A stretch of 64,000 nt of DNA from Cyanophora paradoxa CCMP329 (lineage: Eukaryota; Plantae; Glaucophyta), in NCBI GenBank assembly GCA_004431415.1, contig QPMI01000453.1:310001-374000 (forward strand), read 5' to 3'. Under the pieces are notes generated by a model, which saw only the letters and a list, made by a program, of their open reading frames with translations, was not told the DNA's origin and did no database searches. Position numbers and translations under genes: made by a program. Within the stretch, counting starts at the first letter, position 1; the number at the start of each line of letters is the position of its first letter. Shown here in pieces: positions 6,230 to 50,414 of the stretch.

Positions 6230-9200
6230 TCATCGCCTCGCCTTGGTCGGCGGTGCTGACGGCCGTGGGGGCCCCATCGCCCCAACCGGCTCCGGCAGCG
6301 GGGCAGCCCCGGCCTCAAGTTGCCTCTTGCGCCGGTTAACGTTGCGGCCCGGCCCCGGAGCCGCCGAGGCGGCACCGGTACTGGCGCTGGCCAAGGAATC
6401 CCGGTCCTCGTCCTCCTCTCCGGCCCGGCTGGCCATGGCCACCGGCTGCAGCTGCTGCATCCCCTGCCGGCGCCCCGCGATCGACGACGATGCCACGGAC
6501 GACATGTCGTCCTCGACGACCGGTTGCAGCCGTACGCGTGAGGACGTCGATGCCGGCGCTGCGGCTGCGCTGCGGCTGGGGCGCCCCGGACCAGCACCGC
6601 GGGGGCCGGGGCCGGAGCCGGATCCGATGTCGATCTCTCTGGCGGCACCCGAGGAGGAGGAGCTCGAGAGCACCGAGGGGGGTGCATGCGCCCTCGGACG
6701 GCTCGGGCCTGCGGATGGTCCAGCCGCCGCCTCGGGCTCGTCGGGCTCCTCGTGGCCGGCAATCGCAGCCTCCGGAGCCTGTGACAGGGAATCTTCCGGC
6801 GACACGTCCTCTTGATGTTGTTGAAAATCGAGTGCCATCAGCGCCTGGCCAGAATCAAGCGCAGGTCAGCTGCAGGATCGGGGAATACCGCTAGCTTGAG
6901 TTGCTCCAAGTTGGCCAAACGCACCGAATGCGTGGGTGGTGCGGTAATAAAAGTCCGCCTCTGTGTGTAGCACGTTTCCGCGATCGGATTCTTTTCCTTT
7001 CCACGATTGGCAGGATGGTTGCGATCGAGATCGTACAGCTTAAAGCCTTGCCAATCCCAGAACTTGTAGACGCTCAACGAGAACTTTAGTTCCTTCAATT
7101 CGCTCGCCATCATGGTGAGCATGGTGTCGCCTTTGATGACGTACTGGAAAATCAGCCTCGTGTCCCTGGAAATAAATAATACACGTCAAGATCTCGTCAT
7201 CGGGGACTAAGAAAAAGGAGGCCGCACGTGAGGCTCTGAAATGGATTCACGCTGAAGCCTTCACCTTCTGATTCGCACAGCCAGCTCCAGAATTCGTATT
7301 CGTTCCACGCTCGCGGTGCCTTCCATTCATTCAGCGAATGCGCTCATTCAAACAAATTACGATGAGCACCTTTTCACTTCTCAGCGACTTCAGCAGATTC
7401 TCATTCTCTTTCAAGAGCGCTTGCAGTCTGCGCTTGATATCGGGGAGCTCCTTGAACTCGTGGAGTGGCAATTCGCTCGACATATCCATTTTCGTTTTGA
7501 TTTCGTCCCACGACTGGAGGAAAGATTCAAGAGCAGCACTGCGATTGAACTGTCAATGAACGATAATAGCACGGACGAAACAAAAACGCGGACGGGTCAA
7601 CCGCGCTTGCAGCTGGTGCGCCGGCTTGCGATTGCAATTGGCGCTCGGAAGCTGGAGCGTACGATTGCAGCTGCGGAATCGGACAATTAGACGATCGGCA
7701 AAGAAGCCACTGCATTAATATTAAGACAGCAAAGCAGAATCTTGAACCTGCGCCCCGCCCTCTTGCTGCTTCTGCTGCTGCTGCTGCTGTACATGTTCTT
7801 GTGCGATTCGCGGTTGAGCCCTGCATGCCATAAAGAGAATCAGATGGACATCCAGAAATTAAATATCGATTCTGTGAACGCGTACGGCTCCGCATCGTGG
7901 TACTGCTGATCCTCCGACTCCTTCGCATGCTGACGAGTCTGTTAGAATTCGAATAGAGTTCCTCTCGCGAAACCAGTGCACGTGGCCCCTCACGAACCTC
8001 CTCTTCTTGCTGAGCGCTCGACGCCGCAGGGAGCAGAAGGAGCGGGCTTTCTCCCCTGTCGACGTCGGGCACTGGAGAGGCGCCGTCCTGCTGCGCTAGC
8101 GCTCCAGGCGACCGTGGGCGATCGCGAGCGCTCGACGCTGCAGCTGCAGCTGCGGGGGGCGGAAGGAGCGGGCCTTCGCCCCTGTACATGTTGTCGGGCA
8201 CTGGAGAGGCGCCGGCGCCGTGGGCGGGGAGTTCCCGGTCGAAGGCCTGAGCGGCGGATCCGGAGGGCGCATGCGCACGCAGGGCGTCCGGAGACCTGGA
8301 ATCGACAAGTCCCCGTGGGAGGTACCGCTGCCAGCCGAGATCGATGAGCGAAGTTCGGGAAGGCGGGTGCATGCGCATGCAAATGCCGACCTGCATCGCG
8401 CGAAGGACATCTTCGGCGCTGCAGCTGCTGCCAGTTGCTACGTAGAGGCACTCAAAGTTCACGCCGACTAGATGGAAGTAGTCCTCGAGCTCGGGCTCTG
8501 CCACGCCAGCGTTCTTCTTAGTCGCCATGAACGCCTCGTAGTCCTGCCGGGAGATTAGGAAACGGAATTCTTGAGAGCCGAACGGGAGATATTTAGCACG
8601 GACCTTTGTCGCACTGATCGTTGCGTAAGCCTGCCGGGAGAAACGTAAAACCTTATGATCAAGAAGCAAATATATTTGTGGACGATGGGAATGTATAGTG
8701 CACCTCGAAGGCCGAGTCTACGGTCTTCCATGGCCACTTGCCAGGGAGTGACACAAGAGGGAGAGCCCATTTCCGTGGCAGCGTCTGCACCGAACCGGGG
8801 GATCATGATTAGGGACGAAGGGAGGGTGGAGGAGGATAGGATCATGACTAGGGATCCAAAAGGGAGGAGAGGGGCGTGGGCGGCACGCCTCCAAGGAAGC
8901 TTGCACGTAATCGCCAGTCTTTTCGCGGTAGGTGAAGTACAAATCGAAAGGCACGTGGTATTTTGGCTTAAAAGCTCGGGAGCGCTGCTACAAAATCGTA
9001 TCAAGTTATGATCAGCGGACAGTACTTGATAAATAAAGCATCTGCAATATTAATCTCACCATGTTGATGTCTTGCGACAAGCCGACTCGCGCCTTCCCAA
9101 TGGCAAGGATGCTCGGGGCATTTGCCCACACGAGGACGGCGCCCTGCCCGCGCGATGCATATAAGTCACGAAGGCATATATAACACTAAATTTTAACCGC

Positions 9201-11533
9201 GAAACAAACACGAACGTCTTCACAATCCAGCGGGCCGCCAAGGGGGCGGAAGGAGACGCCTCCAAGCAGCTTTTCCATCTTTTCCAGCTCCTCGCGATCG
9301 TCGCTCAAGTCCGAGTCCCCAGCAGGCGCTGAACAGCCCGTGATCATGAGCGCGAGGGGGAGATCGTATATAAGAGAGCATGAAATTATTCACTTTGCTT
9401 TTCGATTTTCAAAAACACTCTGTGCGGAGGTGCCGTGTGGGGGCAAATTAAAGTTCAGAGTCACAAAACCACGGGCGTTTAATTGCAAGCTTAAGGAGAT
9501 TTGCGCATGCGCGCACCCGCAGGCATTTCCGCGGGCGCGAACCCCATTCATGGCGCTCGAGCTCGAGCTGGAGCTCGACGAGGGGGCGTCGGCATCGGAC
9601 GGAGACGGGTGCGGATGCGGATGCGGATGCGGGCTCGAGTCGGGTTCGGGATCGATCGCGGGCTCGTCCTGAGCCCCGGCGGATTCGCGATCGTCGGATC
9701 CGTCGCGATCGTCGGATCCGTCGCGATCGAACGACTCCGACGTCGCCGGCGACGGGCCCAGGGGCTGCTGCTGGGGGGGAGGTGGCGGGGGGGCGGAGGG
9801 GGAGGACGAGCTCGAGGTGGGGGCAGAAGCGGGGGAGGGGGAGGGGGAGGAGGGGGCGGAGCTCGAGGACGAATTCGAAGGGGCAGCAGCGGAGGAAGAG
9901 GACGAGGACGAGGACGAGGAGGCAGCTGCGGCAGAAGATCTAGATGAGGGGGCGGATCCTGAGGATGGGGGCGACGAGCTCGAGGCGGCGGTGCAATCGA
10001 CCTGCGGTGAAGAAGAAAGGGGCCAGTTAAGATATCGATGGATGCAGCCTTTGAATTCAAATTCGAATAGCAGGGGTACGGCACCCGCGACTTTCTTCCT
10101 CTATTATTCTCTGCCCGCGGCCTCCTGCTCTCGTCCTCGGGCTCGCGAGTCGTCGTCGCCACCTTGGCCTGCCATTAAACCTTCAGGGCCGCATACGAAA
10201 ATTGATTCTAGATCTGGGCGGATTCGAACCAGGAACTTGATGAGCGCACCGGTCCCCTCCAGGACCTCGCGGGGTTCCTGCCGAGGGGGGGAGGGGGGGG
10301 GGGATACTCACGGTTTGCGTGGGGGAAAGATGGGAGGGGGGCACCCAGGTGTTGAACGCGGGGTCCCACAGGCACCATTTGACCAAGAACTCCTCCACGG
10401 TCTTTCCGCCCTCGATCTGCGCGCGGCCCGGTCGACCAAAGCTCAAATCCGGGAGGCGAGTTTAATTTTCGCGGCAGGACTCCGGGACTGGCACGGACCC
10501 TCTCGCGCCTCTGTTTGATCGATTCGACGAAGTACTCAGCCTCCTCAGCCGCTTTCTGAAGGGCAGTTGCAATCGGTGGGGGGCGGGGACGGGAGGGGGG
10601 TGGGCGGGGACGGGAGGGGGGGACGGGAGGGGGGGGGGGGGGGGGGGGCAAGAGGGGAAAGCTGGGAGTACCGGGTTTCCATCGAAGGCGCCCTTGTCCT
10701 TCAGGAACTGTTTGAGCGCCTTGGCGACCTGTGGGGGTACGCTTATTATAAGCAAGGATAGTCACGCAGCCAATAGCTGCAGCTGCAGCTCGCCTCGGGC
10801 GCGTCTTTCCTCTTGTCGAAGCACCCGACCTGTACGGGAGTGTAAGACGCGAAAGTGACGGAAACAGTGCAAGGAGCGGCCGCGGACCGCGCTCTGTGGA
10901 GAGCGACCCTCTCTTGAGAGCGACGCCCTCTCTCCAAACATGGCGCGAAACCATGGCTCGCCGGCGTATTCCCACAGCTTATTGTTGAGTCGGGCATCCA
11001 TCATGTCGTGCTTGCCGTTCGCCAGGAGCTCGAAGAGCTCCGGGCCGCGCAGCGCGATCTTCATGCGGTCGTGGAAGCGGCCCGCCGCATCCTCATCTGC
11101 GGTCCAGTGCCTGACCTGCAGCGCGTGATCATGAGCTCCAGGGACGACATGTACAGCTAGCTATAACGTGAGATCGGCGCCGCGGCCGGCCGCGGCGCCG
11201 GCGCCCCGCGCGCGCGCACCCGCACAGACTTGTGGCTGACCTCAGCGTACCACCTGCGGCGCAAATCAGCGCGCGAAGCTGTGCAGGACAGCGAAGTTAC
11301 TTGCATTGAGCTACCGGCTTTCTTTAGGTGAACGCCGAAGAAACGGGACGGCTGCAGCTGAGCGACGGAGTTGTCCGCGACGGGTCCCTCCGTCTCGCCC
11401 TCGCTCTCCTTCGACTCGTCCTCGCTCTCGGGACGACGCCTCTACGCACGCGGGGCGGTTGATAAGCGCGCGGTTCGAGCTCGCGGGCGGTCGACTCGGG
11501 CACCTTGCGTCTGGCTCCCCGCGAGGCCGCCAT
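6230..11533 (-). CDS. Multi-exon nuclear protein with NLS, AP2-like DNA-binding domain, chromodomain and SAM-like domain
   Basis: ATG 11533 MAASRGARRK|RRRPE. AP2-like 'SRFFGVHLKK..WYAEVSHKS(VR)VRHWTADEDAAGRFHDRMKIALRGPE' (~11350-11040). Chromodomain 'EYFVESIKQR..IEGGKTVEEFLVKWCLWDPAFNTW|EPREVL' (~10540-10255). SAM-like 'PRAWNEYEFWSWL..IFQYVIKGDTMLTMMASELKELKFSL' (~7320-7070). Stop at 6230. That all exons belong to one gene is inferred from strand and the splice phases checked. Confidence 0.65.
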
Positions 11534-18300: not shown

Positions 18301-20611
18301 TAAATCTAATAATAGAGACTGGGCCCTGGGAAGAGACCGGACCCACGAGGAGCTGTCGGAGCTCCGCCACCTCGTGCGCGTACCCCCCTCCACTCTCCGG
18401 CACCCTCCTGCGCCCCCGTACCCCCCTTACACTGTACCCCAGAAGCACCTGACGGAGCTTGACTTGAGGGACCCGCTGCGGCCACACCGCCTCGAGACCC
18501 AGGCATGCAGGTCCCTGGGATCCCTCTAAATTAAAACTGTTTCTTTGTTCCTTCATTCCTTTCTTATATTAATCGCACCTTTGTAGATGGCCGCCGTGTG
18601 CGCCCTGCGGTCCCTTCGGACGCTCCGCCTGCGGATCATGCCGCCCGGCCGCCGGCGCGAGAATTCGAAGTGCGTACGATCGTTTCCCGGGCTTTGGCCA
18701 TCCCCCAACTTCAACGCGTCCTGACCCAACGCCGAATCGCATCGCAGCGCTTCTCCCGTCGTGCTGCGCCCCGCCGCGCTGCCTCACCTCACGGAGCTCG
18801 ACGTGTCCGTCATCCGCTACAGGTTCTCAGCGCAGCTTCGAATTCGCATTAAAATTTCGCCTTCGATCAGCTCAGAAAATTCATTCTCCTGCAGGCCGCC
18901 CCTGGACCGCCAGAGAGACATACTCGAGCCCGATTCGACCGCCGCCCCCATCATCAGGCGCGCTGCGCTGCGTTTCGCTTTAATTATATAAATTCTAGCG
19001 ATTGCGGCTTCGCTATGGGATGACTGGGATCGATCGGGCCGCAGCCAGCTGGGCCCCTTCGTCCTGGCGCAGCCGTCCCTCGCGGCCCTCTCCCTCCTCC
19101 TCGAGTCCCCGGGCCGCGGATCCACTTCCTCGGCCGAGGCCTCCGAGTCCGAGTGCCAGGTGCGGGCCGGGCGGGCGCCTTAAGCTTAAAGCTTCCCGCC
19201 TTGCTCGGAATGCGAGGCACCTCTTATCTTATGATTTTCTGTACTTCCAGGCCGCGGAGGCGCTCGTTCGGGCGGTGGGGCCCCTGCTCCGCAGCTACCG
19301 CCGCACGGGCCTGCCCCTCGCCGGCTCCCTGCAGCCGGTGCGCGCAGCCGCTGAGCCCGCGGCCCGCCATTGAGCTCAACTTCAGCTTCTTTTAGGCCTA
19401 GGCCTAGGCCTTTGAGTCATATATAAGTTTAAGCCTTTAAGCCAGTGCCTTCGGCGGTGAGTCGCTGCAAGGGCGACCATTACGCCTCATGAGACGCTTC
19501 AAGCTAAGGCCTTTCTAACTAAGGCCTTTTTAATTTGCTTCAACGCCTTCGGCGGTGCGCCGCTTTCTTTCTCAGCGGCACTTAATATGAGACGCGCAGG
19601 AGGGAAGGGCGACCGTCGCGCCGGCCGCAGCGGCCGCGGCGGCGGCCGCGGCGTCGGCGGCGGCGCGCGCGGAGCTCGCGGCGGTCGCCGAGTGCGGCCC
19701 CGCCCTCCGCGCGGTGAGTCTCGGTCGATGCCCCTTCAAGCCTTGAAGAAGCTTAATTCGAAGCTTAAAGCGTCTAGCCCATTCTTTGTAGCTAAGCTGA
19801 ACTTCAAAATAGAATGCTCAAACTCGAGAGCTTAAAATTCAAGGCTTACGAGCTGAAGAGCCTAAGAGCTGCTGCTCTCAAGCTCCGAGGCTCAAGATAG
19901 AAGACGCCTCTCGGAAGCGTAGGCCCGGCTTGAGAGCTCGAGCTTGAAAAGCTTTTGGAAGCTCAAGCGGCTTCTCAGTCGAGTCTCATCTCAAGCCCGG
20001 GGCGCAGGTGTCGCTGGCAGTGGACGCAGAGGGCGCCCTCTCCGGCGAGGACCTCGCGCCGCTCGCCGCCCTCCGCGCCCCCGACCGCGAGCTCGTGCGC
20101 CGGCCCGGGCATGGCTTATAACTACTTCGCGATCAGCCCAGGGGCCAAAGCTTGAAATCTTAGAAGGAGGCTTTGGGCTTTTCAACTTTTAAGCCTTCAA
20201 GGACCCGGGAGGACTAGCTGATCATGAGAAGCTTAAGCTTCGAAGGCTTCACATGGGCTAATGTTCATCAAAAGCTCTAGGTCTGAAGCCGCTGATCATG
20301 AGCCCTAGGCCTCCCTCCGGAAGGCTAGCGCTAGGGCTTTTCATTTCAAGCCCAACCTGCTTAGAAGCCGCTGAAGCCCTCCGGAGGGCCCTGAGGGCTG
20401 ACGAGCGGCCCGGCGCTCTCCCTCCGCTGAGGGCTGAGGGCTCGACCTCCCTCCGGAGGGCTAGCGCTAGGGCTAGCGCTGATCAATGACGAGCGGGGCC
20501 TGCGCGCAGGTGGTGGAGGAGGGGCATGCGCAGGCGGGCCTCGCGGCGGCGCGGCGGGCCCTCCCGGCCGCCGGCTGGCGCCTCCGCACCGTGCCCCGTC
20601 GCGGATACTGA
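15394..20611 (+). CDS. F-box/LRR-like protein with many small exons
   Basis: F-box 'LERLPDELVARIVIALGPRDA..RLWAVSRRLSALL' at ~16285-16457; LRR-like exons 'TFPNLE', 'VPGLQEILIG', 'KHLTELDL', 'ALPHLTELDVS'; last exon VVEEGH...PRRGY* ends 20611. Start and internal exons are approximate. Confidence 0.7.
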
Positions 20612-21346
20612 TCATGATCATGAGCGGCGGGCCCCGCCGCGCCGCCCGGCCGCCCCCGCGGCTGGCTCCAGGGCCGGGGCAATCATTGATTGGCTAGAGT
20701 CATTGCTCTGGCTAGAACAAGGATTATTAAACGATCTTGGTCCGGATCCGGGCTCCTTTAAGCCTCCTATTAGGGCTCCTAACTCGAGTCCTAAGGCCCT
20801 CGTTGGAGGCTTAACTTAGAGCGCATTGTTCCATGATGGTCCCATCATCTACTCCCATGAACCAGAGAAAATTCGAATTCCCGAAGCCAACTGGGCCATG
20901 GGGGTACACTCTGACAGACGAGCCGCTAGCCTAGGCCTATAGCTAGCTATATAGGCCTGCGCAAGCTTAAGTGCAGCGGCGAGAGCAGCATCGACGGTGC
21001 GCGCTTGCGGGAGTTAATTTCGTACCTCGGTAATTAAGTGGGCGCGGTATTTCTGTGTTGTACGGTACTGTCTAGTACACAGTACACTGTCTACTACTAG
21101 TACAGTAGTAGTACTGTAAACCCTCCAGACCCTCACCGCGCCGGCCGCCGCAGCCGAGACGGCGCCGCCGGAGCCCGGTGCCCCAATTGCAAGCGCTAAT
21201 TATAATAAGGAGAAGGTCCTGCGGGGCCTCGCCGCCCTCCTCGGCCTCGGAATGTAGACCTTTGCCCCTCTTGGCCCACCTCTCTTCCCCCACCCCCCTT
21301 CTCTCTACTCGCGCGCCATACTGAGCCAGCATTTCCCGTACCGGTG

Positions 21347-22022
21347 GGAAAAGTGCCGGTGTATCGACCGCGCGCCAGCGCTCGGCTCGCGATCGGCGAG
21401 GGGACGACCTGCCGCCTGCCGCAGTGCTGGCCATGGACCGGTCAAGGTCTCCCCCTAGGCCTCCACTCCATGGCCGCCTCCTCTAGGCGCCAGCTGCAGG
21501 TCACGGCGGGCACGGCATCATGATCACTCGAGAAACGCCGAGGCCGAGACGCACCTTCCGGCCCCTTGAGGCTGTATGTCTAGAAGAAGCGTTATCGCCC
21601 GGCACGAAAGAGAGAGCAGAAGGGGGGGGAAAGCTGAGCAGGCGGACCGAATCAAGTCTCGCTCGAGGCCATGGCCAGGCGAGTTCGGCCACTGGCGAGT
21701 TGGAGGCGTCCGGCGGCGATTGAGCGGAGGGCAACTCGACAGGCCTGCAGAGAACAATCGGTCAGAGGCTGCGCAAGCGGCGGCGCCGCGCGGCGAGGCG
21801 CGAGCGAGCGCGTTCTCGCTACACCGAAATCGGTGATTTCGGTGCTTGGCGGAAAAGTGCCGGTGAATCGACCACGCGCCAGCGCTCGGCTCGTCGGCTC
21901 GCGATCGGCGAGGGGAGGGGACGACCTGCCGCCTGCCGCAGTGCCACGGTGCTGGCCATGGACCGGTGCGCGTAAAACTCGTCGAGGTCTCCCCCTCCAC
22001 TCCACGGCCGCCTCCCCTAGGC
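21347..22022. repeat. Diverged direct-repeat pair (21347-21460 and 21851-22022), non-coding
   Basis: Shared ggaaaagtgccggtg..atcgacc.cgcgccagcgctcggctcg..cgatcggcgagggga..cgacctgccgcctgccgcagtgc..tggccatggaccggt..aggtctccccct. Confidence 0.8.
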
Positions 22023-24211: not shown

Positions 24212-27200
24212 ATGGCGTCGGGGTCCGGCACCTCCCCGTCGGCCGAGAGCGCAGCAACAGACGTCAAGATCGAAGCAGCGTCTCCGGTCGGACCAGAGCA
24301 TCGGCATCATCAGCACATTTGCACATCGCGTACGCAGGCCGTCGCGGCGCGTGCCATGAAGGAGCACCTCAGCCCCGATTCCCAGCCATGCGAGTGCCCC
24401 GTGTCCGAGGATTGCATGCTGGACGACCTCTTCTCGTGCTGCGATGCCCTTGGGCCGGAATGCGATTGCGACTGTATCCCGCTCGCATTGCCCGGCGAGA
24501 TCGCCGCGCCGGGAGACGCGCTGGCCCCAAATGATGGGCTGCGCGTCGCGTCTTCCTCGGAGGGCGCTACGTGCATCAAGGCGCATGGATCGGAACTTCA
24601 CTGGCATTTTGAAGAGGTTCGCTGCTCTCGAGCGCGTTCAAACTTCGGTGATCCTCACCTCACTCTCCTTGGCAGAATCACGCCTTCTTCGCCGACAGCG
24701 GCTGCGTGCCAGCGCTGTGCCCCGGCGATGTTGCGAGGTTCGCGTCAGCGCCGTCGGCGGAGGATGCCCTCGCGTGCGAGCTGGAGGGCCACCACCACGC
24801 GCACCACCAGCACCAGCCGGATCAGCCGCAGCTTTTCGTTCCGACCGAGACCCTCGACAGCCTGAGCGGCGTCATATTTCCCGGCTGCTCGCTGGGGCCC
24901 GCGGTCCAGTGCTGGAGCAGCCACGCGGCGGCGCCCGGCTGCGATCGCGCCGACCCGTTCGCGCCAGCGGTAGTCGCGGAATCGGCGTCGCCGGCGCCCA
25001 TGGATCTCGTTCCTACCGGTGACGGGCAGGCGCCGACGCGCTCGACGACGCCGCCCGAGGCGAGCCCCGCGGTCCGACCGCACCACCACCACATCATCCA
25101 CCACCACCACCCGAACCCCTTCCGCACCCTTTCGATCTCGGACTCGGAGCACGCTCCGACCGAGTCTTCCCCGCCCGCTTCCCACAACCCCTCACCCTCC
25201 CCGGTCGCCTCCTGCAGCTCGCACCGCCTCTCCGCGAGCCCCACCTCCGCGCCGGCCCTCTGCTGGCAAGCGCACGTGACGCGCCCCGGCAAAAGGAAGA
25301 CGCCTTGCACCATCCACTCGGCTTCTGACTCCGGAGCCGGCTCACCATCCTGCTCGCCCTGCCCGCCCCCCCGCTGTCCCATCCACGGCTCCGCCGCCGC
25401 GCCCGCAAAGGCCGCGGTGCTCAGGCCATCGCCCTTCGCCTGCCCCGTGGTCAGTTCCTTTTCTTCCGTTTCCTCTCCTTTCCTCTGAGAACGAGGATGA
25501 CGGCAGGCACGAGCGGAGTCGCCTCGGATGCTTACAGTGCGCGCGGCGGCGAGACGCGAAAGCTTAGCTGCGGGCGGCGGAGGCTCCGCGGCCTCAACGG
25601 CCGCGATCGTCAGCAGCGCCTCGTCGATGATGGGGTCCACCCCCTCGTCCGGGGACGAGGCCACCGCGCCCGCGAGCCCCGCGGGGCGCCCGCCTCGCTC
25701 CCTGTCCTCACCGACGCCCTCGGACGCGACCGACGCGTCCTCGCTCGCCGCCTCCGCCGGCGGCGGCGGCGGCGAGCTGGGGCCGCGGCGGAGGGGCCGC
25801 CGCCCGCGGAGCATGATGCCGGATCCGGCGAGCATCGTGCCGCTCGCCCCCACCGGCCAGCTCTCCGTTGTCTTTGCACCCCTCGAGCCGGGACAGTCGG
25901 GCCCCGTGCGCCCCGCCCCGCCCCGCCCGGTTCGTCCATCTGACGGGCTGCGGCGTCGCCGCGCTGCGCTGCGCAGTCGGAGGGCAAGCGGCGGCTCGTG
26001 TGGACGACCGAGCTCCACGATCACTTCGTTCGCGCGGTCGAGCACCTCGGCATCGAGCGTGCGCTACCCCACCCCCTTTCCCCCCCCCTCTTATTTGATC
26101 TGATCTGATCTGATTCCGCGGCGCCAGGGGCCACTCCCAAGGCCGTTCTCAGCGTGATGGGCATCGAGGACCTGCGCCTAGAGCACATCAAGAGCCACCT
26201 GCAGGTATACTGTACCCCCGGTCTCTCGCCCCTTTCTTCTCTCTGAAAGCCGTACCCGGCAGAAATACCGTGTCTCGCTGCGCAAGGGCCTCGAGTACAT
26301 CGCCGACGAGAACGAGGAGGCGCGGAGCCCTCTGGGCGAGCCGGCGTCGGCGGCGGCGGCCCCGGCCCCGGCGCAGTCCCCGCGCGCCGCGCCCCCCGCG
26401 GCGTCGGGTTCCGGACCCTCGACTCCGTCCTCGACCATCGCTTCGCCCCGGGGCCTCGCCCCGCCGCCTCCGCCGCCTCAGCTTCCGCCGCCGCCGCCGC
26501 CGCCGCAACTGGCGCTTCTCCCGTCCGACCCCGTCTCGTCACGCCTTGCTGAGCTCGAGAGACAGGTGCGCTTGTTTCGCCGGCGTTGGGGCCGCGTTTC
26601 GGGAAGGGTTTGGGGGCGGCGGGGACATTTTCGGGTGGGTTTTGGGGGTTATTTCACTGCTTCTTTTTCATTGAAGGCCTCTTCGATATGATAGATACCA
26701 AACGTGTGGGATCGCGATGGGCTCCGGCCCGCGTGATTGAAAATACGTCTTTTTCAGGGCACTGATCGTTGGCCGCGCATTTCGTTTCATTTCCTAACTC
26801 TATTTCATTGAAGGCCGCTTCGATATGATAGATACCAAACGTGTGGGATCGCGATGGGCTCCGGCCCGCGTGATTGAAAATACGTCTTTTTCAGGGCACT
26901 GATCGTTGGCCGCGCATTTCGTTTCATTTCCTAACTCTATTTCATTGAAGGCCGCTTCGATATGATAGATACCAAACGTGTGGGATCGCGATGGGCTCCG
27001 GCCCGCGTGATTGAAAATACGTCTTTTTCAGGGCACTGATCGTTGGCCGCGCATTTCGTTTCATTTCCTAACTCTATTTCATTGAAGGCCGCTTCGATAT
27101 GATAGATACCAAACGTGTGGGATCGCGATGGGCTCCGGCCCGCGTGATTGAAAATACGTCTTTTTCAGGGCACTGATCGTTGGCCGCGCATTTCGTTTCA

Positions 27201-27704
27201 TTTCCTGACTCTATTTCATTGAAGGCCGCTTCGATATGATAGATACCAAACGTGTGGGATCGCGATGGGCTCCGGCCCGCGTGATTGAAAATACGTCTTT
27301 TTCAGGGCACTGATCGTTGGCCGCGCATTTCGTTTCATTTCCTAACTCTATTTCACTGAAGGCCGCTTCGATATGATAGATACCAAACGTGTGGGATCGC
27401 GATGGGCTCCGGCCCGCGTGATTGAAAATACGTCTTTTTCAGGGCACTGATCGTTAGCAGGCCTTAGAGCAGTTTCTTTCTCCCCTCGCCTCGTTTCCAC
27501 CACCCGAGTCAAAGCTGACTGACGTACCCCTTTCTTCTTCTTCGTTCGCAGCTCGAGGCGGAGCGGAGGGCCCGGACGGAGCTGCAGGCGGCGCTGGACG
27601 CCGAGCGGAAGGCGCGGGCGGCGGTGGAGGGCGAGCTCGCGCGCCACAGGCAGGCGGCCCTGGCCGCCGCGTCCCTGCTGGCGACCACGACCGCCCAGAA
27701 GTGA
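24212..27704 (+). CDS. GARP (G2-like/PHR-type) Myb-like transcription factor with His/Cys-rich N-terminus and C-terminal coiled coil
   Basis: Spliced domain KRRLVWTTELHDHFVRAVEHLGIE|ATPKAVLSVMGIEDLRLEHIKSHLQ|KYRVSLRK (~25986-26285) has the SHLQKY signature; last exon LEAERRARTELQAALDAERKARAAVEGELARHRQ...QK* at 27551-27704. Start codon tentative. Confidence 0.88.
26662..27456. repeat. 137-bp tandem array, ~5.8 near-identical copies, in the last intron of the GARP gene
   Basis: Unit starts (ca[tc]tgaagg) at 26669, 26806, 26943, 27080, 27217 and 27354. Confidence 0.97.
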
Positions 27705-28026
27705 TCGATCGTCCCGGCTTCTCCTCCTTCTTCTTTGATTCAGGGCATAGGCTTTCGCAATAGGCAGGCGGCCCTGGCCGCGGCGTCCCTGCTAGCGACC
27801 ACCGTCGCCCAGAAGTGATCGATCGTCCCGGCTTCTCCTCCTTCTTCTTTGATTCAGGGCATAGGCTTTCGCAGGAGGCAGGCGGCCCTGGCCGCGGCGT
27901 CCCTGCTAGCGACCACCGTCGCCCAGAAGTGATCTTCTTAGCGGCTTCTCGTACTCCTCCTCCTCCTTCGCCGAGTCGACTTCTTCAATTCAGGGCGTAG
28001 GCCTAGGCTTCTGCCGCCTTCTTCCG

Positions 28027-28057
<31 letters not shown>

Positions 28058-28150
28058 TCTGTTAGGCGGCCCTTGCCGCCGCGTCCCTGCTGCCGACCAC
28101 CGCCACCGCCCAGAAGTGACCGGCCCGGCCCGGCGGCTTCTCCTCCTTCT
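27648..28150 (+). repeat. Serial, decaying copies (~113-bp period) of the GARP gene's last coding bases, stop codon and 3' flank
   Basis: aggcggccct(gg/tg)ccgc.gcgtccctgct..cgaccac..cgcccagaagtga recurs at ~27652, 27766, 27880 and 28064. Confidence 0.88.
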
Positions 28151-29170
28151 CCTTCTCCTTTCTTCTTCTTCGATGCAGGGCGTTGGCTTCCGCCGCCCGG
28201 CCACGCCCTGTTGTAGACCTGTGCGTGTGTTGTTATGGTAACTATTCGTGTCTGAGTAGTTTCAAATAGGCCGTGTCGTTCTTTATTGTTGAACGAATGC
28301 GAGTTATTTCCGCGCGATGCTAATTATAACCGTCAACAGCACTGCAGCTGCAATCGTGCGCTGTAATTATATAACCACTTGGGACGCATGTATGCAGCAG
28401 TTCTAGATCTCTACTAGCTTTTGTTAATCATATAACGCGGATCGCGATCATCGAGCGGCGGGAATTACATACGAACTGTTCATGATAATTCAATTTGGTC
28501 CGATATCGATCGATATCCGGTCCCGTGGCCCTATATATCTAGATCTATATATATGGGGCGCCGGCGCAGTCCCGTGGCCCCCGAGCTCCCTAATTTTAAG
28601 TACTATATATTTAGTTAACGTGGACTGGCATCCCTTTCCGCGAGCTCGGCCCCGGCTGGGCCCGGCGGGGGCGCATAAACGGCATCCCCAATTTTAATTG
28701 CAACGTGGACTGACAAGCATAAGTACAGCCCTAGGCCTTTCCGCGGATTTCGAAGCTGGCTGAGCAATGAACTGGCTCAGGTCGCAGACGTCGACGCGGC
28801 CCGTTTGCGTCACGCGCCCAGCGTATGAATTGCTGTTGGTCGAGCGCTACCTATAGCTCGAGGTGTCGTAAGGCAGGATCTAGATCTAAATCAATATTGG
28901 AGGCCAGAGATTGTGCGTGGTTATCTATATAGCTAGATCTGGCCATGAACGTTAACAGATCTAGACTCTTGCTATTGAGACTAGATGCACATGTGCACAT
29001 GAATTCGAACTGCCACAGTGCAGCTCGGGATCGCAATAGTACTCATCAAATTAATTTTGAATGACTCATGATCACTGTACATGCATATGTGTAACAGTGT
29101 GATATCGATCATCGGATATATATCGATCATGATCATGATCATGAGTCAGTGAATTGAACTGCAGCTGCAA

Positions 29171-29850
29171 TTAGAAGGCGTCGACCTCGAGGCCGTCGTC
29201 GCCAGCGAGCATCTGCCCGAACCAAAGGCGATCAGTATTATAATTAATGCATATGCATATGGCCGTCTCGGGTCTAGATTTGCCCCATATGCGTGCGGCG
29301 AGTCGCCGGCGAGGCTTTCGATCGGGACTCCGGGAAGCTTTCAAGTTTTAAGCGCACCGCGGCCTCGGCCTCCATCTCGGCCTCCAGTTCGGCCATCGAG
29401 AGCTCCGCCTCGAACTCCAACTCCTCCGCGCTCACGACCTGCATGCCCCGGCCAGGCGTACGCGTTAACGTTGAGGGCAGATGTAGGTCTAGGCCTGATA
29501 TCGATCGCGATATCGATGCTGCATGCATATGCATATGCGCAGATCGTTAACGTTGAGTCTAGAGCGCACTGCGGCACGCACCAGCGACTCGTCGTCAAGC
29601 TGCGAAGTGGGGTAGCAGTACCCGTCATAAGCCACACGCTTAGTCGAAGTCGTAAGTGCGCCCTTGCAGTACGACTTCGCGTCCGTCAAGGTCGACTTGG
29701 TCGCGTAGATCGCAGTCGTGCCGGTGCAAGTGGAGTTGGAGAAGCAGTACGCAGCTGCAGGCACGAGGGCCGCGTTACTATTGCGACGCACTGCGCCGCG
29801 CCGCCCGGCGGCGGCGCGCAGGTTGAGAATTTCGCAAACATACTCGGCAT
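29171..29850 (-). CDS. 100-aa microprotein A: 60-aa 4-Cys Ser/Thr-rich core plus acidic tail (4 exons)
   Basis: Exons 29850-29844, 29754-29582, 29438-29358, 29212-29171; donors gtatgt/gtgcgt/gtgcgc, all acceptors cag. Protein MPTAYCFSNSTCTGTTAIYATKSTLTDAKSYCKGALTTSTKRVAYDGYCYPTSQLDDESL-VVSAEELEFEAELSMAELEAEMEAEAA-MLAGDDGLEVDAF*. A paralogue lies at 31636. Confidence 0.75.
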
Positions 29851-30212
29851 CTTGAGAGCGCGTGGCGGTGGAGGCGGGGCTGGCTAGCGCTTCTTTCTTT
29901 GACCGTCGGACTGGGAGTCTGCGCAGCTGCAGCTGGGATCTCGAGCTCAAGACAGCAAATTTTGCTAGGCCCGCGGCCCAAGCTTAAGCGGGCCACGCGG
30001 CCCACGCGTACTAGTAGCTACTAGCTACTAGTATAGCTTCGCTTCGGAGAAGTTCGGACCGAATCGGACTCCGGGACGCCTACAATAGCTAGTAGGCTAC
30101 TATTACAGTAGTGCTCGGTAGGCTATTGCAGTTACTTTAATACAGTATCGGAAGGCTACGGAAGCTCGCGAAAACTTGAAAACAATTGCAAGTGCGAAAA
30201 ACAATCGATATA

Positions 30213-30483
30213 CCGTGCAACACTAGCTTAGGTAATGCGCGCACTTAAGTAATGCGGTCCCAAATTAATGCATTTTTTGGTGACAAAACGCATTAATTTG
30301 GGACCGCATTAATATTGATACGTCACCGGTTTAATTTGTACACATACGTACACATACGTACACATACATACGTTATAACGCAGCCAAAAAGCTTCAAAAC
30401 GCATTAATTCGGTGCCAAAACGCATGAGGGGTCCGGGTCCAAAAGCGCATTGATTTCTGGCGCATTAATTAAGTGTTACACGG
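30213..30483. mobile_element. MITE with TA target-site duplication (Tc1/mariner-pogo type)
   Basis: TA|ccgtgcaacact ... agtgttacacgg|TA terminal inverted repeats (1 mismatch in 12), subterminal taatgcg repeats, and an internal perfect 22-bp inverted repeat taatgcggtcccaaattaatgc / gcattaatttgggaccgcatta. Confidence 0.75.
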
Positions 30484-31635
30484 TACATATATATCATGAT
30501 CATCATATGCATGACTCACAGTGATCTGCAGAACTTCGTTGTTTTCGGAAATTTGCAGCCTGCAAGCTTTATCCTAGTATCATAAGCGCTGCCGGCGCCT
30601 GCGCCGCTCAGCGGCTGCGCGCCAAGCGACATTTCCTTAAAAACATTTCCCCGTTGTTTTTCGGATCGGAGTACGGACTGTACGGCGGTACACTCGAACG
30701 GAAGGAGGATCGTCCTCGGAGGTCTTCCGAGCCCTTGGAGGCAAAAACAATCTACCGGGTATCCATCAGGGAGCCTCGGACTCTGCTCGGAGCCTCGGAC
30801 TCAGCCTCGGAGGCTCGATCCGCCGGGCCGGATTAAAAAATATTCCGGATCCGACGCGGCTCGCAACTTGATCATGAGTCGCGAGCTCGCGTCGACGTCG
30901 CCTCGCGACTCGAGTCGCGAGTCGCGATCGCCTTATCTACTAGCTACTAGTAGCTAGTACCAGTAGATCACAATTGCAAATTTCACAATTGCAAGGGGAG
31001 CCTGGCCATGGGGACCGGCCGCGGAGGGCCTGGGACTGGAAGGCTGCCAGGCTGGCCGCTGGCCCTGTCTGGGACGTCGACTCCGGATCCAGGAGTCCAG
31101 GGCCCAGGCCCCAGGCTCGAGCCTCCAGGCTCCCGGGAGGCCTCTAGATCTCCAGTCCTAAGACTCCTAACCGGGAGCCTGGAGGCTCGATCGCGAGCTT
31201 TCAAGTTTTCCAGGGCCACGGCGGGTTAGGACTCTAGCTCAGCGGCTATAGCTATAGCCTATAGGAGCTCGACTCGGCGAGCTCGAGGCCGGGCCGGCGC
31301 CTGGCCATGGGCGCCCGGGCCGCCGCCGCCGGCGCCGGGCCGGCCCCGGCCGGCCGCGGGCCGGCGCCGGATCTAGATCGATATCCGATGATCGCAGACT
31401 CGAACGACGCAGAGGCACAGATCTAGCCCTAGTAGCTAGATCTAGATCTAGACTCTAGAGCTAGAGCCGCTGAACTGTAGTCTCACGGTCTAGATCTGTA
31501 GCCTCGGCCCTCCGGAGCACACATCAGCCCCCGCCGGGAAAACGACCGCCCGCTCTCATCAGTGAGCCTCGAGCTCGGCCGAACGGATCCGGAGCAACCT
31601 TGGACGCGTAATTACTAAGTTAAGCCTACTCCGCC

Positions 31636-32297
31636 ATGCCGATCTACACGTGCTACTCAGATTCCACCTGCACGACCTCGCTCGGCACGGTCTCCGCCGG
31701 CGGCAGTCCGGGCCAGACGTGCGGCATTTGATTTGCGCCGGCCCGGGCCGTCGATCGGCGCTTGCAATTGCAATTGCATGGCATATGTATGCATTGCCGC
31801 GGCTGTTAATGCGTGACCGCTGCGCAGATGCAAGACCATGTACACGAGCACCGTCGCATACATGCAAACGCAGCCGCAATCGATGATCGGATGCACCGCC
31901 GCCCTCCTGGACGAGGAATCGCAGGTGCGCCTGCAGCTGGCCCGGCGCCGGCGCGGCCGCCAGCCGGGGACCTGATCAGATGATTATATTTTATTTAATT
32001 AAGACCCGAGCGCGGCCGCCCACGGCCATGTATATAATCTCTTATTCAACTCGTAATTAATATTCGCGTTCGCAGCTGGTGGATGAGGTCGAGGTCGACG
32101 TCGCGGAGGGGCTCGAGGCGGATCCGGAGGCGGAGGCGGAGGCGGCCCTGGACGCGGCCGAGCTGGAGGCCGCCTCCGGATCCGAGCTCGACCAGCTGGT
32201 GCGCAGCGCCCAGATGCAGCTTTACATAGTAAATTAAGGAAATAGAAGCTAAGGCTCGCGATCGGCCCTGGCGCCGAGCTGAAATGGCCAGGTCTAG
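31636..32297 (+). CDS. ~102-113-aa microprotein B, paralogue of A: 60-aa 4-Cys core plus acidic tail
   Basis: Exons 31636-31718, 31828-31924, 32076-32198, then either a tiny last exon 32292-32297 or read-through to TAA at 32237. Protein MPIYTCYSDSTCTTSLGTVSAGGSPGQTCKTMYTSTVAYMQTQPQSMIGCTAALLDEESQ-LVDEVEVDVAEGLEADPEAEAEAALDAAELEAASGSELDQL. Confidence 0.72.
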
Positions 32298-32684: not shown

Positions 32685-32785
32685 TACCGTAGACGACTTA
32701 ATTACCGCGCTGACTTAAATACCGCGCTGCCAAATTACCGCGCTCAAAATTTTTATAACTCGGTAATTTGGTAGCGCGGTATTAC
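32685..32785. mobile_element. Solo end of a related TA-ccgt DNA transposon/MITE
   Basis: TA-ccgt start, three taccgcgct direct repeats, and a 21-bp inverted repeat (32720-32740 / 32761-32781, 1 mismatch). Same architecture as the left end of the 30213 element; no partner end found. Confidence 0.55.
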
Positions 32786-33229
32786 CCCCCGGTAACCCCT
32801 TGGTCGCGAGCGGGGGCGCCTCCGCTGCTCGAAGAAGTGGGACCGCGGCCCTAGGCCTCGCGCGCCCGTGCTGTAGACGCCTTGGACGTGCACCGCTGTA
32901 ATCCAAACATAGATCTACCGGTAGATCTCTCCGAGGCTCCACAGAAAAAATTACGCAAGGACTCGAAGAGAAAAACGGGGGGGGGGGGGGGGGGGGGTCA
33001 GGTCTAGTACAGGAGGAATCCACCCGAGGGCGGGGGGGACGATGTATCTTGATGTATCATGCGAACGAGACATTACACGTGCACGTGGCGAATCACTGGC
33101 TGTAGCCGCTTACTATAGCTAAGTGCGTCGCTCGGCGGCTGGTCATGACCTCGGCGGCTGGTCATGACCTCTGCCCCGCGCGCGCCCGCACCGACCTCCG
33201 CTTCGCATTTCCGCACGGCCGCGGCCCCC

Positions 33230-47972: not shown

Positions 47973-50414
47973 AGCTGAAGAACATGCATACGATCATGAC
48001 AAACTAGTACTAGTACTAGGAGCACCTGGACGACGGAGGCCTAGGAAAGCCTCTCTCTAGATCTAGTGATCTTGATCGATATCGTGTACATGTTAACGTT
48101 CTGATTCGCTCGCCCGCTCCGGCGCAGCTCTTTAATTTCAGCTCAAGAACGTTAACCCGACGATTTTCAAACTCACGATCGGCCGCGGGGAGAACAAGCT
48201 GACGTACGCGTCGCTGCCATCAGAGGTGCACTTGATCATGAGCACCACCCGGGCCCGGGACGGCCGGACGGTCCCCTACGCGTAGATCTAGAGTAGAGTG
48301 CGTAGATCTAGATCTAGAGTAGAGTGCGTAGATCTAGCTATAGATCTAGAGTGGCCTCTAGATCTATAGATTCCTAGGCCTGGCCTCTAGATCTATATTT
48401 AACCTCCCCCCCCCCCCTCCCGCCCCCCGGGACGAGACTCGGTACCTCAGGGCCTCCTCGAGGACGTCGACGTCCCCTTATGCCCCTAGGCCTCCGAGGC
48501 ATCACATAACTAGGGGCCCGGCCGCGTTTGGCGCGCCGGGGGTGCAAGGGGGGAATCGGGATCTAATGAAAGAGTAGTAGTGGCACGAACATGCACGGGG
48601 CAGATGTAGATCGACCCCGGCCCAGCGCGCGCGGCAGGTTGAAGTAGTAAATTAATTATATAAAGATAGACACAGAGCGGCCTCTGGCCCGGCAAGGCTC
48701 GGAGCGACGATAGCTACCAGAAGCTGCATGGATCCGTAACGACCGGAAAGCGGCGTGCAGCGGCGCGTCCGGAGGCAGTGCCCAGGCCGGGTGGCAGGCG
48801 GCGGGGGCGCACGCACGTGCACGCGGCGCAACACAGGGCTGCACGCGGCGTGCACGCAGGACACGAACTATAGCTAGTCTGCTGTCCGGGTGCCGATCGC
48901 AACAAGAGCGCCGAGCGCCCGGCCCGGCCGGCGTGCTCGGCCGGCACACGCGGTTCTGCAATATAAGCTCGATATAATTTAATTTATAAGCTCGATATAA
49001 GCGCAGCAAGAGAGTACGGTCTAGATCTGGCCGGCCGGGCGTGCTCGGCTGCGATCAGCTGCAGCGGCGCAGGCAGCAACGCAAGCAGTTTCTAGGCGGA
49101 AATCTAGAGGAGACGTACGCGTTGACAGGTAGAGAGAAGTGGTTCCATGCAGAACCGCGCAACGAAGAGCAAGGCGTACGCGACGCACTGCGAGGAAGCC
49201 GAAATCTAGAGGAGACAGCTAGGGAGAACTGGTTCCATGCAGAACCGCGCAAGGAATTCGAAGACCGGAGTTAGAGAGAAGTTAGTTTTCCCCTCGAAAA
49301 CCACTTTTCCCCCTCTAATTCGACGCTCGAAAGTCGAGAGCTGACCGGTCCACCGAGCCAATCCGAACGCGAATAACCCGTCATTTTTTTCCGGTGTTGC
49401 AAACTGGACCTCGAAAACGGCCTCATAGAAAAGTTTTGGCTGAAGCGAGGGAACGGGAAGCAAGGGGGCCCCCTTCCCCCCTTGCAATTACTGCCCGCGC
49501 GCCCACGCCCGACTGCCCTCGAGCTCGCGCACCCGAAGTATACGTACCCCACAACAGTGCGCCCCCCCCTCGCCCCCCCCCCCTCCCCCCCCGCCCCTTC
49601 CCCGCCTCCGGTCCCCCCGCGCACGCTCCCTGCGGCAGGGTCCCCGCCTCGCATGATCATGACTCAATTAATATTGCAAGCCACCTGGCCCTGATCATGA
49701 CTCATGATCAGTTAAACGCGAATTCGGACTGGATCTAGATCTGAAGCGCAGGGCCGGGGCCGGCTCGCGATCGTGATCTCCGCGAGACCAGGCAGCCGTG
49801 GTGATGCCAGCGGGCCGGGGGACCTCAAAAGGAAGAAGAGCCTGCGCCCCGGCCCCGCCCCTCCGGACCCCGCCCCGGGGGACCGTCGGACCTCGAAGGA
49901 GGAACGAAGGTCTTCCCCCGGACCCCGACCCGTGTAGCGTCCACCGGGCGCCCGCGGCGCCCTGAGACGCGGCCGCTTTCTCTCCCAGAGAACTGGACTT
50001 TCGTGACGATCCCGGACGAGGGGATCCGGAAGGGCGAGCTCCGAACCCCCCCCCCCCCCCCCCCCACCCGGCCTCCACCGGTCCCCCCTCGCCCCTCGGG
50101 GAGGTTCTGTAACGTATCTGCGATCGCTGAGGCGGCCGCTGACGCCTGGCCCCGCCTCGTTTCCCACACCCAGCCCCCTCTTCCCCCCCCTCTCCCCCCC
50201 CCACCCCCACCCTCCCCCAGGCCTCGGGATATCTTTATCTGGTTTAATTTGATCATGCATATGAGCATGAGCCTCGCGAGTCTCTAGAGGGAACGGCTGC
50301 GCGCCAGAGCCCGCGGCCGGCACTGCTAGACTGAATCAGCGGCCGATCCGATGATCGCGAGGGCGAGTATCAGCAAGAAAATCAGGAATGTTGAGCACTA
50401 GTCATGATCACTGA

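Follow-up and report, generated by a model that had tools for sequence, protein, structure and literature searches.

Thionin and class II defensin precursors join a small cysteine-framed domain to an acidic C-terminal extension. Their acidic part neutralizes the toxin and directs vacuolar sorting, and the precursors also have an N-terminal signal peptide, six to eight cysteines in defined frames (CxxxC and CxC for the defensins), and a mature domain that is strongly cationic. Conotoxin-type cysteine-rich secreted peptides have an invariant cysteine frame with hypervariable loops, and the conserved, non-mature region that adjoins it is an N-terminal signal and pro-region. The ribosomal stalk proteins P1/P2 and the bacterial SSB tails exemplify acidic proteins that dock through a tip. 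They have about 100–120 amino acids and an isoelectric point (pI) of about 4, and an acidic stretch rich in Ala and Glu leads from a small N-terminal domain to a C-terminal tip that is short, hydrophobic, and conserved. The class II LanA peptides are bacterial and intron-less, with an N-terminal acidic leader carrying EL-type motifs, a Ser/Thr/Cys-rich part, and a LanM enzyme encoded nearby. Here we compare these systems with a pair of head-to-head genes, g13326 and g13327, from the glaucophyte alga Cyanophora paradoxa CCMP329. The window is the whole stretch of DNA analyzed, 64,000 nucleotides of contig QPMI01000453.1 (tig00020710; positions 310,001–374,000, forward strand), and the gene pair occupies 29171–32297 of it; all coordinates below are window positions.

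The predicted products of the pair, taken together with three relatives described below, resemble each of these systems in part. They have the small cysteine-framed domain of the thionin and defensin precursors and, behind it, an acidic C-terminal extension with a charge of −11 to −15, but they have no signal peptide, their cores carry a charge of 0 to −3, their four cysteines include a C-x5-C spacing, and Pfam returns no match. They share the invariant cysteine frame and hypervariable loops of the conotoxin-type peptides, without a sequence match, but their conserved region is C-terminal and is not accompanied by an export signal. Their size, pI, and layout recall P1/P2 and the SSB tails, which lack the cysteine frame and do not match in sequence; Foldseek does list the stalk proteins, but none of those rows is significant (E ≥1.5). 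Compared with LanA, the order of the acidic and Ser/Thr/Cys-rich parts is reversed, the genes are eukaryotic and spliced (three introns each), and no such enzyme was seen among the neighboring open reading frames. The zinc ribbon and knuckle (CxxC/Cx4C) and twin-Cx9C (CHCH) spacings are not matched either, and no profile from Pfam or PDB sequences fits. An earlier note on this DNA, made from the letters alone, had likened the pair to the thionin and class II defensin layout and to lanthipeptide leaders. The first likeness fails because no signal peptide is present or encodable upstream and the cores are neutral to acidic rather than cationic, and the second because the acidic part is C-terminal in spliced, eukaryotic genes. 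We infer that these proteins are neither thionin- or defensin-like secreted toxins nor precursors of a known class of ribosomally synthesized and post-translationally modified peptides (RiPPs).

From its sequence, the locus is predicted to be two spliced, divergently transcribed paralogous C. paradoxa genes. Gene B (g13326) is on the minus strand and encodes 100 amino acids, and gene A (g13327) is on the plus strand and encodes 102. Their predicted products belong to a five-member, C. paradoxa-restricted family of apparently leaderless proteins of 100–121 amino acids. We consider it very probable that the family and both window genes are real. The cores of these proteins are fast-evolving, and the junction and tail that follow are conserved. 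Because a conserved junction and tail stand behind a fast-diversifying four-cysteine core, we favor a reading with two modules, a variable cysteine-framed core set on a conserved acidic handle, and we give this reading about an even chance. The core would be the diversifying working part, a small alpha/beta fold that its four cysteines would hold together by forming two disulfides or by binding a metal. A common handle for docking, shielding, sorting, or cleavage would be formed by the junction and tail.

The family alignment carries this reading. All five members have the cysteine frame C-x5-C-x16–27-C-x14–20-C within an N-terminal domain of 54–73 amino acids. Cys1 is preceded by an aromatic residue or Thr, Cys3 is followed by Lys or Arg, and a Gly lies 1–3 residues before Cys4. 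The four cysteines are invariant in 5/5 sequences, along with L55, D56, E58, a Val past the junction, and the pattern AEL.A...E...L in the tail. The junction, LDxE[SA]x, is found in every member directly before the tail. Averaged over all pairs of members, identity stands at 25% for the core, 72% for the six-residue junction, and 55% for the tail, and most of the family profile score comes from the junction and tail. The tail is about 40 residues long, rich in Glu, Ala, and Leu, and has a charge of −11 to −15 in all five; the pI is 4.1–6.7 for the cores and about 4.1 for the whole proteins. Gene B, P0003, and P0004 end in a hydrophobic tip, MLAxDxGLxxDF..., that gene A and P0005 do not have, and the family profile detected no tip-homologous exon downstream of gene A. 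Cleavage near LDxES is possible, the junction being the best-conserved stretch, and it would make the junction a putative processing site.

None of the five sequences has a signal peptide. The maximum 9-residue Kyte-Doolittle mean over the first 38 residues is 0.68–0.96, and no member has a hydrophobic N terminus; the earlier note had seen no signal peptide in either window gene. The upstream spacer shared by the two genes, about 1.8 kb, encodes no ATG-started hydrophobic leader exon on either strand. A cyanelle transit peptide was considered and rejected: the N-terminal aromatic residue is present, but the conserved cysteine domain begins at residues 6–16.

Paralogy was established by three further members and not by the pair alone. 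A HMMER search with a profile of the pair against 1.84 billion representative sequences gave four further proteins at E ≤0.001. Three of these are the C. paradoxa proteins g15415, g20169, and g9455 (P0003–P0005), which are 103–121 amino acids long, are encoded on other contigs, and matched at E 4e-6 to 3e-5. The fourth is a low-complexity insect protein, and no credible relative was found outside C. paradoxa. A hidden Markov model (HMM) built from P0003–P0005 alone recovered the gene B product (P0001) at 70.5 bits (E 2.5e-19) and the gene A product (P0002) at 27.4 bits (E 6e-6), using a proteome-size Z of 25,831; at 27 bits, gene A is the most divergent member. Scanning all six frames of the window with the three-member HMM gave five best fragments that are all exons of genes A and B, and the family HMM detected no further copies there. 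The five family loci are spread over at least four contigs.

The two window genes are only distantly similar to each other. Their spliced translations both begin MPxxxC[FY]S[ND]STCT, as first noticed, and BLASTP aligns only these first 13 residues. A composition-preserving shuffle test of the two cores gives p ~0.006, all of it due to the same 13 residues; the remaining 47 core residues score z = −0.3, the tails give p ~0.06, and window-wide tblastn gives E ~0.9. The earlier claim of a paralogous pair thus stands by way of P0003–P0005, and the pair by itself is weak past residue 13. By blastn, neither the DNA of the two genes nor that of their flanks showed any similarity, so the observation that the protein is conserved though the DNA has diverged is borne out: protein-level conservation is kept without DNA-level similarity between A and B. 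Gene A and gene B are 35% identical, and the window genes are 35–46% identical to the dispersed members. Neither is nearer to its neighbor than to the dispersed members, and therefore the pair is old.

The two genes are not hidden, as the earlier note had called them. The spliced translation of gene B is identical to EukProt tig00020710_g13326.t1 (P0001, Cyanophora paradoxa EP00741), which was retrieved by a word search with the long exon of gene B. The spliced translation of gene A is identical to tig00020710_g13327.t1 (P0002, 102 amino acids), which was retrieved by a search seeded with the gene A exons. The coordinates first proposed agree with these published models to the base, including a doubtful 6-nucleotide last exon in gene A, and 1,785 bp separate the two start codons, matching the estimate of a head-to-head pair about 1.8 kb apart. 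The published C. paradoxa annotation comes from BRAKER1/Augustus, with RNA-seq as the training data (PMC6704402). The features of the locus are as follows.

29844–29850, minus strand: gene B exon 1, ATG plus 4 nucleotides, then a GTATGT donor; its first 7 nucleotides are the same as those of gene A.

29582–29754, minus strand: gene B exon 2, the four-cysteine core, residues 3–60, ending LDDESL at a phase-0 GTGCGT donor.

29358–29438, minus strand: gene B exon 3, acidic, 27 codons, phase 0-0.

29171–29212, minus strand: gene B exon 4, the conserved C-terminal tip (MLAGDDGLEVDAF) and the stop codon; the tip is common to P0003 and P0004.

29851–31635, no strand: upstream spacer of the divergent pair, 1,785 bp, common to both genes, with many 6-bp palindromes and a hairpin at 30250–30311; presumably a bidirectional promoter region.

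31636–31718, plus strand: gene A exon 1, residues 1–27 plus 2 nucleotides, with Cys 6 and Cys 12 and a GTGCGG donor.

31828–31924, plus strand: gene A exon 2, residues 28–60, with Cys 29 and Cys 50, ending LDEESQ at a phase-0 GTGCGC donor.

32076–32198, plus strand: gene A exon 3, acidic, 41 codons, phase 0-0.

32292–32297, plus strand: gene A annotated exon 4, 6 nucleotides encoding Val and a stop; doubtful, present as such in the P0002 sequence.

The gene B introns are at 29755–29843, 29439–29581, and 29213–29357, and those of gene A are at 31719–31827, 31925–32075, and 32199–32291. All six are GT-AG introns, and five of the six have GTGCG-type donors, a donor type that is abundant in the window. 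Both genes have the four-cysteine core of exactly 60 residues that the earlier note described, with LD[DE]ESx as its last residues before a phase-0 intron and a Glu/Ala-rich exon after it. The intron after residue 60 is conserved, as claimed; the other introns are at differing places, and the first interrupts gene B after 7 nucleotides of coding sequence and gene A after codon 27 plus 2 nucleotides. The 7-nucleotide exon of gene B gives the same Met-Pro start that gene A has unspliced. Exon 2 of gene B is 100% identical to P0001 and is also matched by the family HMM, and its exon 3 is the top window match of the independent three-member HMM (E 3e-7). An equally simple 3′ end for gene A would have exon 3 continue unspliced as far as the TAA at 32235–32237 (open reading frame 32079–32237).

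Base composition sets the exons apart from the DNA around them. The in-frame G+C content at third codon positions is 0.78–0.93 across the two genes, compared to a G+C content of 0.53–0.67 in the introns and spacer. Palindromes of 6 bp are enriched 4- to 4.6-fold in the non-coding DNA around the pair; palindromic positions make up 3.4% of the exons compared to 2.4–15% of the introns and spacer, and the exons are poorer in palindromic hexamers than their surroundings. Palindromes were counted at 28000–32000 and also at 8000–10000, 20000–22000, and 48000–50000. Six-base palindromes (AGATCT, TCGCGA, TCTAGA, ATCGAT, CATATG, and others) occurred at 2.6–4.6 times the shuffled level in non-coding stretches and at about the expected level in coding-dense ones. 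The excess seems to be shared by non-coding DNA throughout the C. paradoxa genome.

The comparison with databases left the family without a described relative. The family had no Pfam match at E values up to 10 and no NCBIfam or PHROGs match, and the family profile, searched against PDB sequences, likewise drew a blank at E up to 10. No relatives came from scans of metagenome and viral contigs, and ESM Atlas gave no usable lead. Full-text literature searches turned up no paper about these genes, and a table in the C. paradoxa genome paper lists g9455 without an nr hit. AlphaFold2 run with the five sequences gave a mean predicted local distance difference test score (pLDDT) of 62, with 63–76 in the core; run with two sequences, it gave 47. 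In the predicted structure, a strand-strand-helix-strand-strand domain is followed by a junction that is disordered and then by a long helix. Foldseek against the PDB returned a best E of 1.5 and VIA-align against 48,161 representatives returned Z ≤4.0, neither of which assigns a fold. The earlier note had proposed an undescribed family and had called for a search for further paralogues; five C. paradoxa members are now in hand, three of them (P0003–P0005) on other contigs, with nothing alike in Pfam, NCBIfam, PHROGs, PDB sequences, or fold libraries. Neither a known-family match nor transposable-element arms were found. The family is without described relatives, domain, or fold match, and it is new in the weak sense that is true of many protist orphan families.

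Several results weigh against a variable core on a conserved handle. The core-only profile scores 11 and 7 bits (shuffle p 0.01 and 0.003), which is weak. Low-complexity Glu/Ala/Leu sequence arises easily in a GC-rich genome, and the tail identity is inflated by it. A tail in the form of an amphipathic helix or coiled coil was dropped, the amphipathicity being no higher than that of shuffled tails. Confidence in the structure model is middling, and no fold matches it. Look-ups found none of the five family proteins as an exact product on assembled public contigs. Gene A has an uncertain 3′ end and no conserved tip, and it could be decaying. The handling role assigned to the tail is one that we infer.

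A broader version of the two-module reading makes the LDxE junction and polyanionic tail one case of a Cyanophora-wide portable C-terminal module. Leaderless proteins of the disulfide type would be routed or assembled by this module along a path for which an N-terminal signal peptide is not required, and the four-cysteine family would be one diversifying class of its cargo. Taken jointly, the module, its routing role, and the cargo role are unlikely.

The explanation that competes best with a core on a handle is that these are self-contained cytosolic or nuclear proteins, with neither sorting nor processing, in which the cysteines serve either as ligands for a metal (Zn or Fe) or as a redox switch. 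On this view, the polyanionic tail would be a surface for basic partners, as a nucleic-acid mimic or in a chaperone-like way, or a solubility tail. The missing signal peptide, the lack of a transmembrane segment, and the whole-protein pI of about 4.1 fit this explanation, and four invariant cysteines in a leaderless protein point to the reducing cytosol, where metal binding is usual. Size and layout recall stalk P1/P2, which are the top, though non-significant, Foldseek rows. However, the family alignment has no CxxC pairs, and its cysteine spacing differs from those of the known zinc knuckles and zinc ribbons. A metal site that serves a housekeeping partner would also not usually lie in a core with 25% identity and variable loop lengths. 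The blank Pfam, PDB, and fold searches count against it as well, and we judge a metal or redox protein to be somewhat improbable.

Precursors of processed peptides (toxins, pheromones, or RiPP-like products), in which the core or the tail would be freed near LDxES and exported or modified, are a less probable explanation, and we think it quite unlikely. An invariant cysteine frame with hypervariable loops and a conserved flank is the pattern of a cysteine-rich secreted peptide superfamily, and the junction is the best-conserved segment (72%), as a processing site might be. Against this, none of the five proteins has a signal peptide, no candidate leader exon lies upstream, the cores are not cationic, and the acidic part comes after and not before the Ser/Thr/Cys part. 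We know of no eukaryotic RiPP class with a core-then-acidic-tail layout. The earlier note had seen no modifying enzyme in the window, and none was recognized among the neighboring long open reading frames, which are without informative Pfam matches in what was a limited test.

That one or both models are non-functional, as an ab initio artifact or with gene A a decaying pseudogene in low-complexity, palindrome-rich DNA, would suit the divergence of gene A (27 bits, no tip, the weaker gene), its implausible 6-nucleotide last exon, and the 7-nucleotide first exon that gene B requires, but it is very unlikely given that the cysteine frame, junction, and tail recur at five loci on at least four contigs, that third-position G+C content and palindrome depletion set the exons apart from the introns, that both open reading frames are intact with canonical splice sites, and that the short gene B exon recreates the unspliced Met-Pro start of gene A.

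The DNA that surrounds the pair has features of its own. No transfer RNAs and no Rfam matches at gathering score were found at the gene-pair locus. Two near-perfect hairpins, at 30250–30311 (27-nucleotide arms, 96%) and 32718–32783 (32-nucleotide arms, 84%), resemble microRNA precursor models only far below gathering scores. A poly-C run at 28027–28058 and a poly-G run at 32975–32997, 4.9 kb apart and inverted, flank the gene pair; no further similarity was found between these arms, and the bracketing may be due to chance. An inverted DNA duplication or a set of transposable-element arms was rejected, as blastn between the two halves at word size 7 returned only the C30/G23 runs and short chance matches. 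Upstream lies a plus-strand gene whose exons near 26000–26290 encode a GARP/MYB-like WTxELH...SHLQKYR motif. An apparent intron of this gene contains a 137-bp unit repeated 5.8 times at 99% identity (26662–27455). The last ~57 nucleotides of its coding sequence, the TGA, and the 3′ flank lie in a second tandem repeat at 27648–28110, which has 2.5 copies of 114 bp at 95% and a diverged copy at about 28064–28110, with the C30 run at 28027–28056 between.

The interest of the family is a conserved acidic C-terminal module behind a fast-evolving cysteine-framed core, with no export signal, in a key early-branching alga. If the tail is a sorting or assembly signal, it would reveal an unrecognized trafficking or docking system in glaucophytes; otherwise, these acidic proteins would be no more than a small orphan family whose interest is local.

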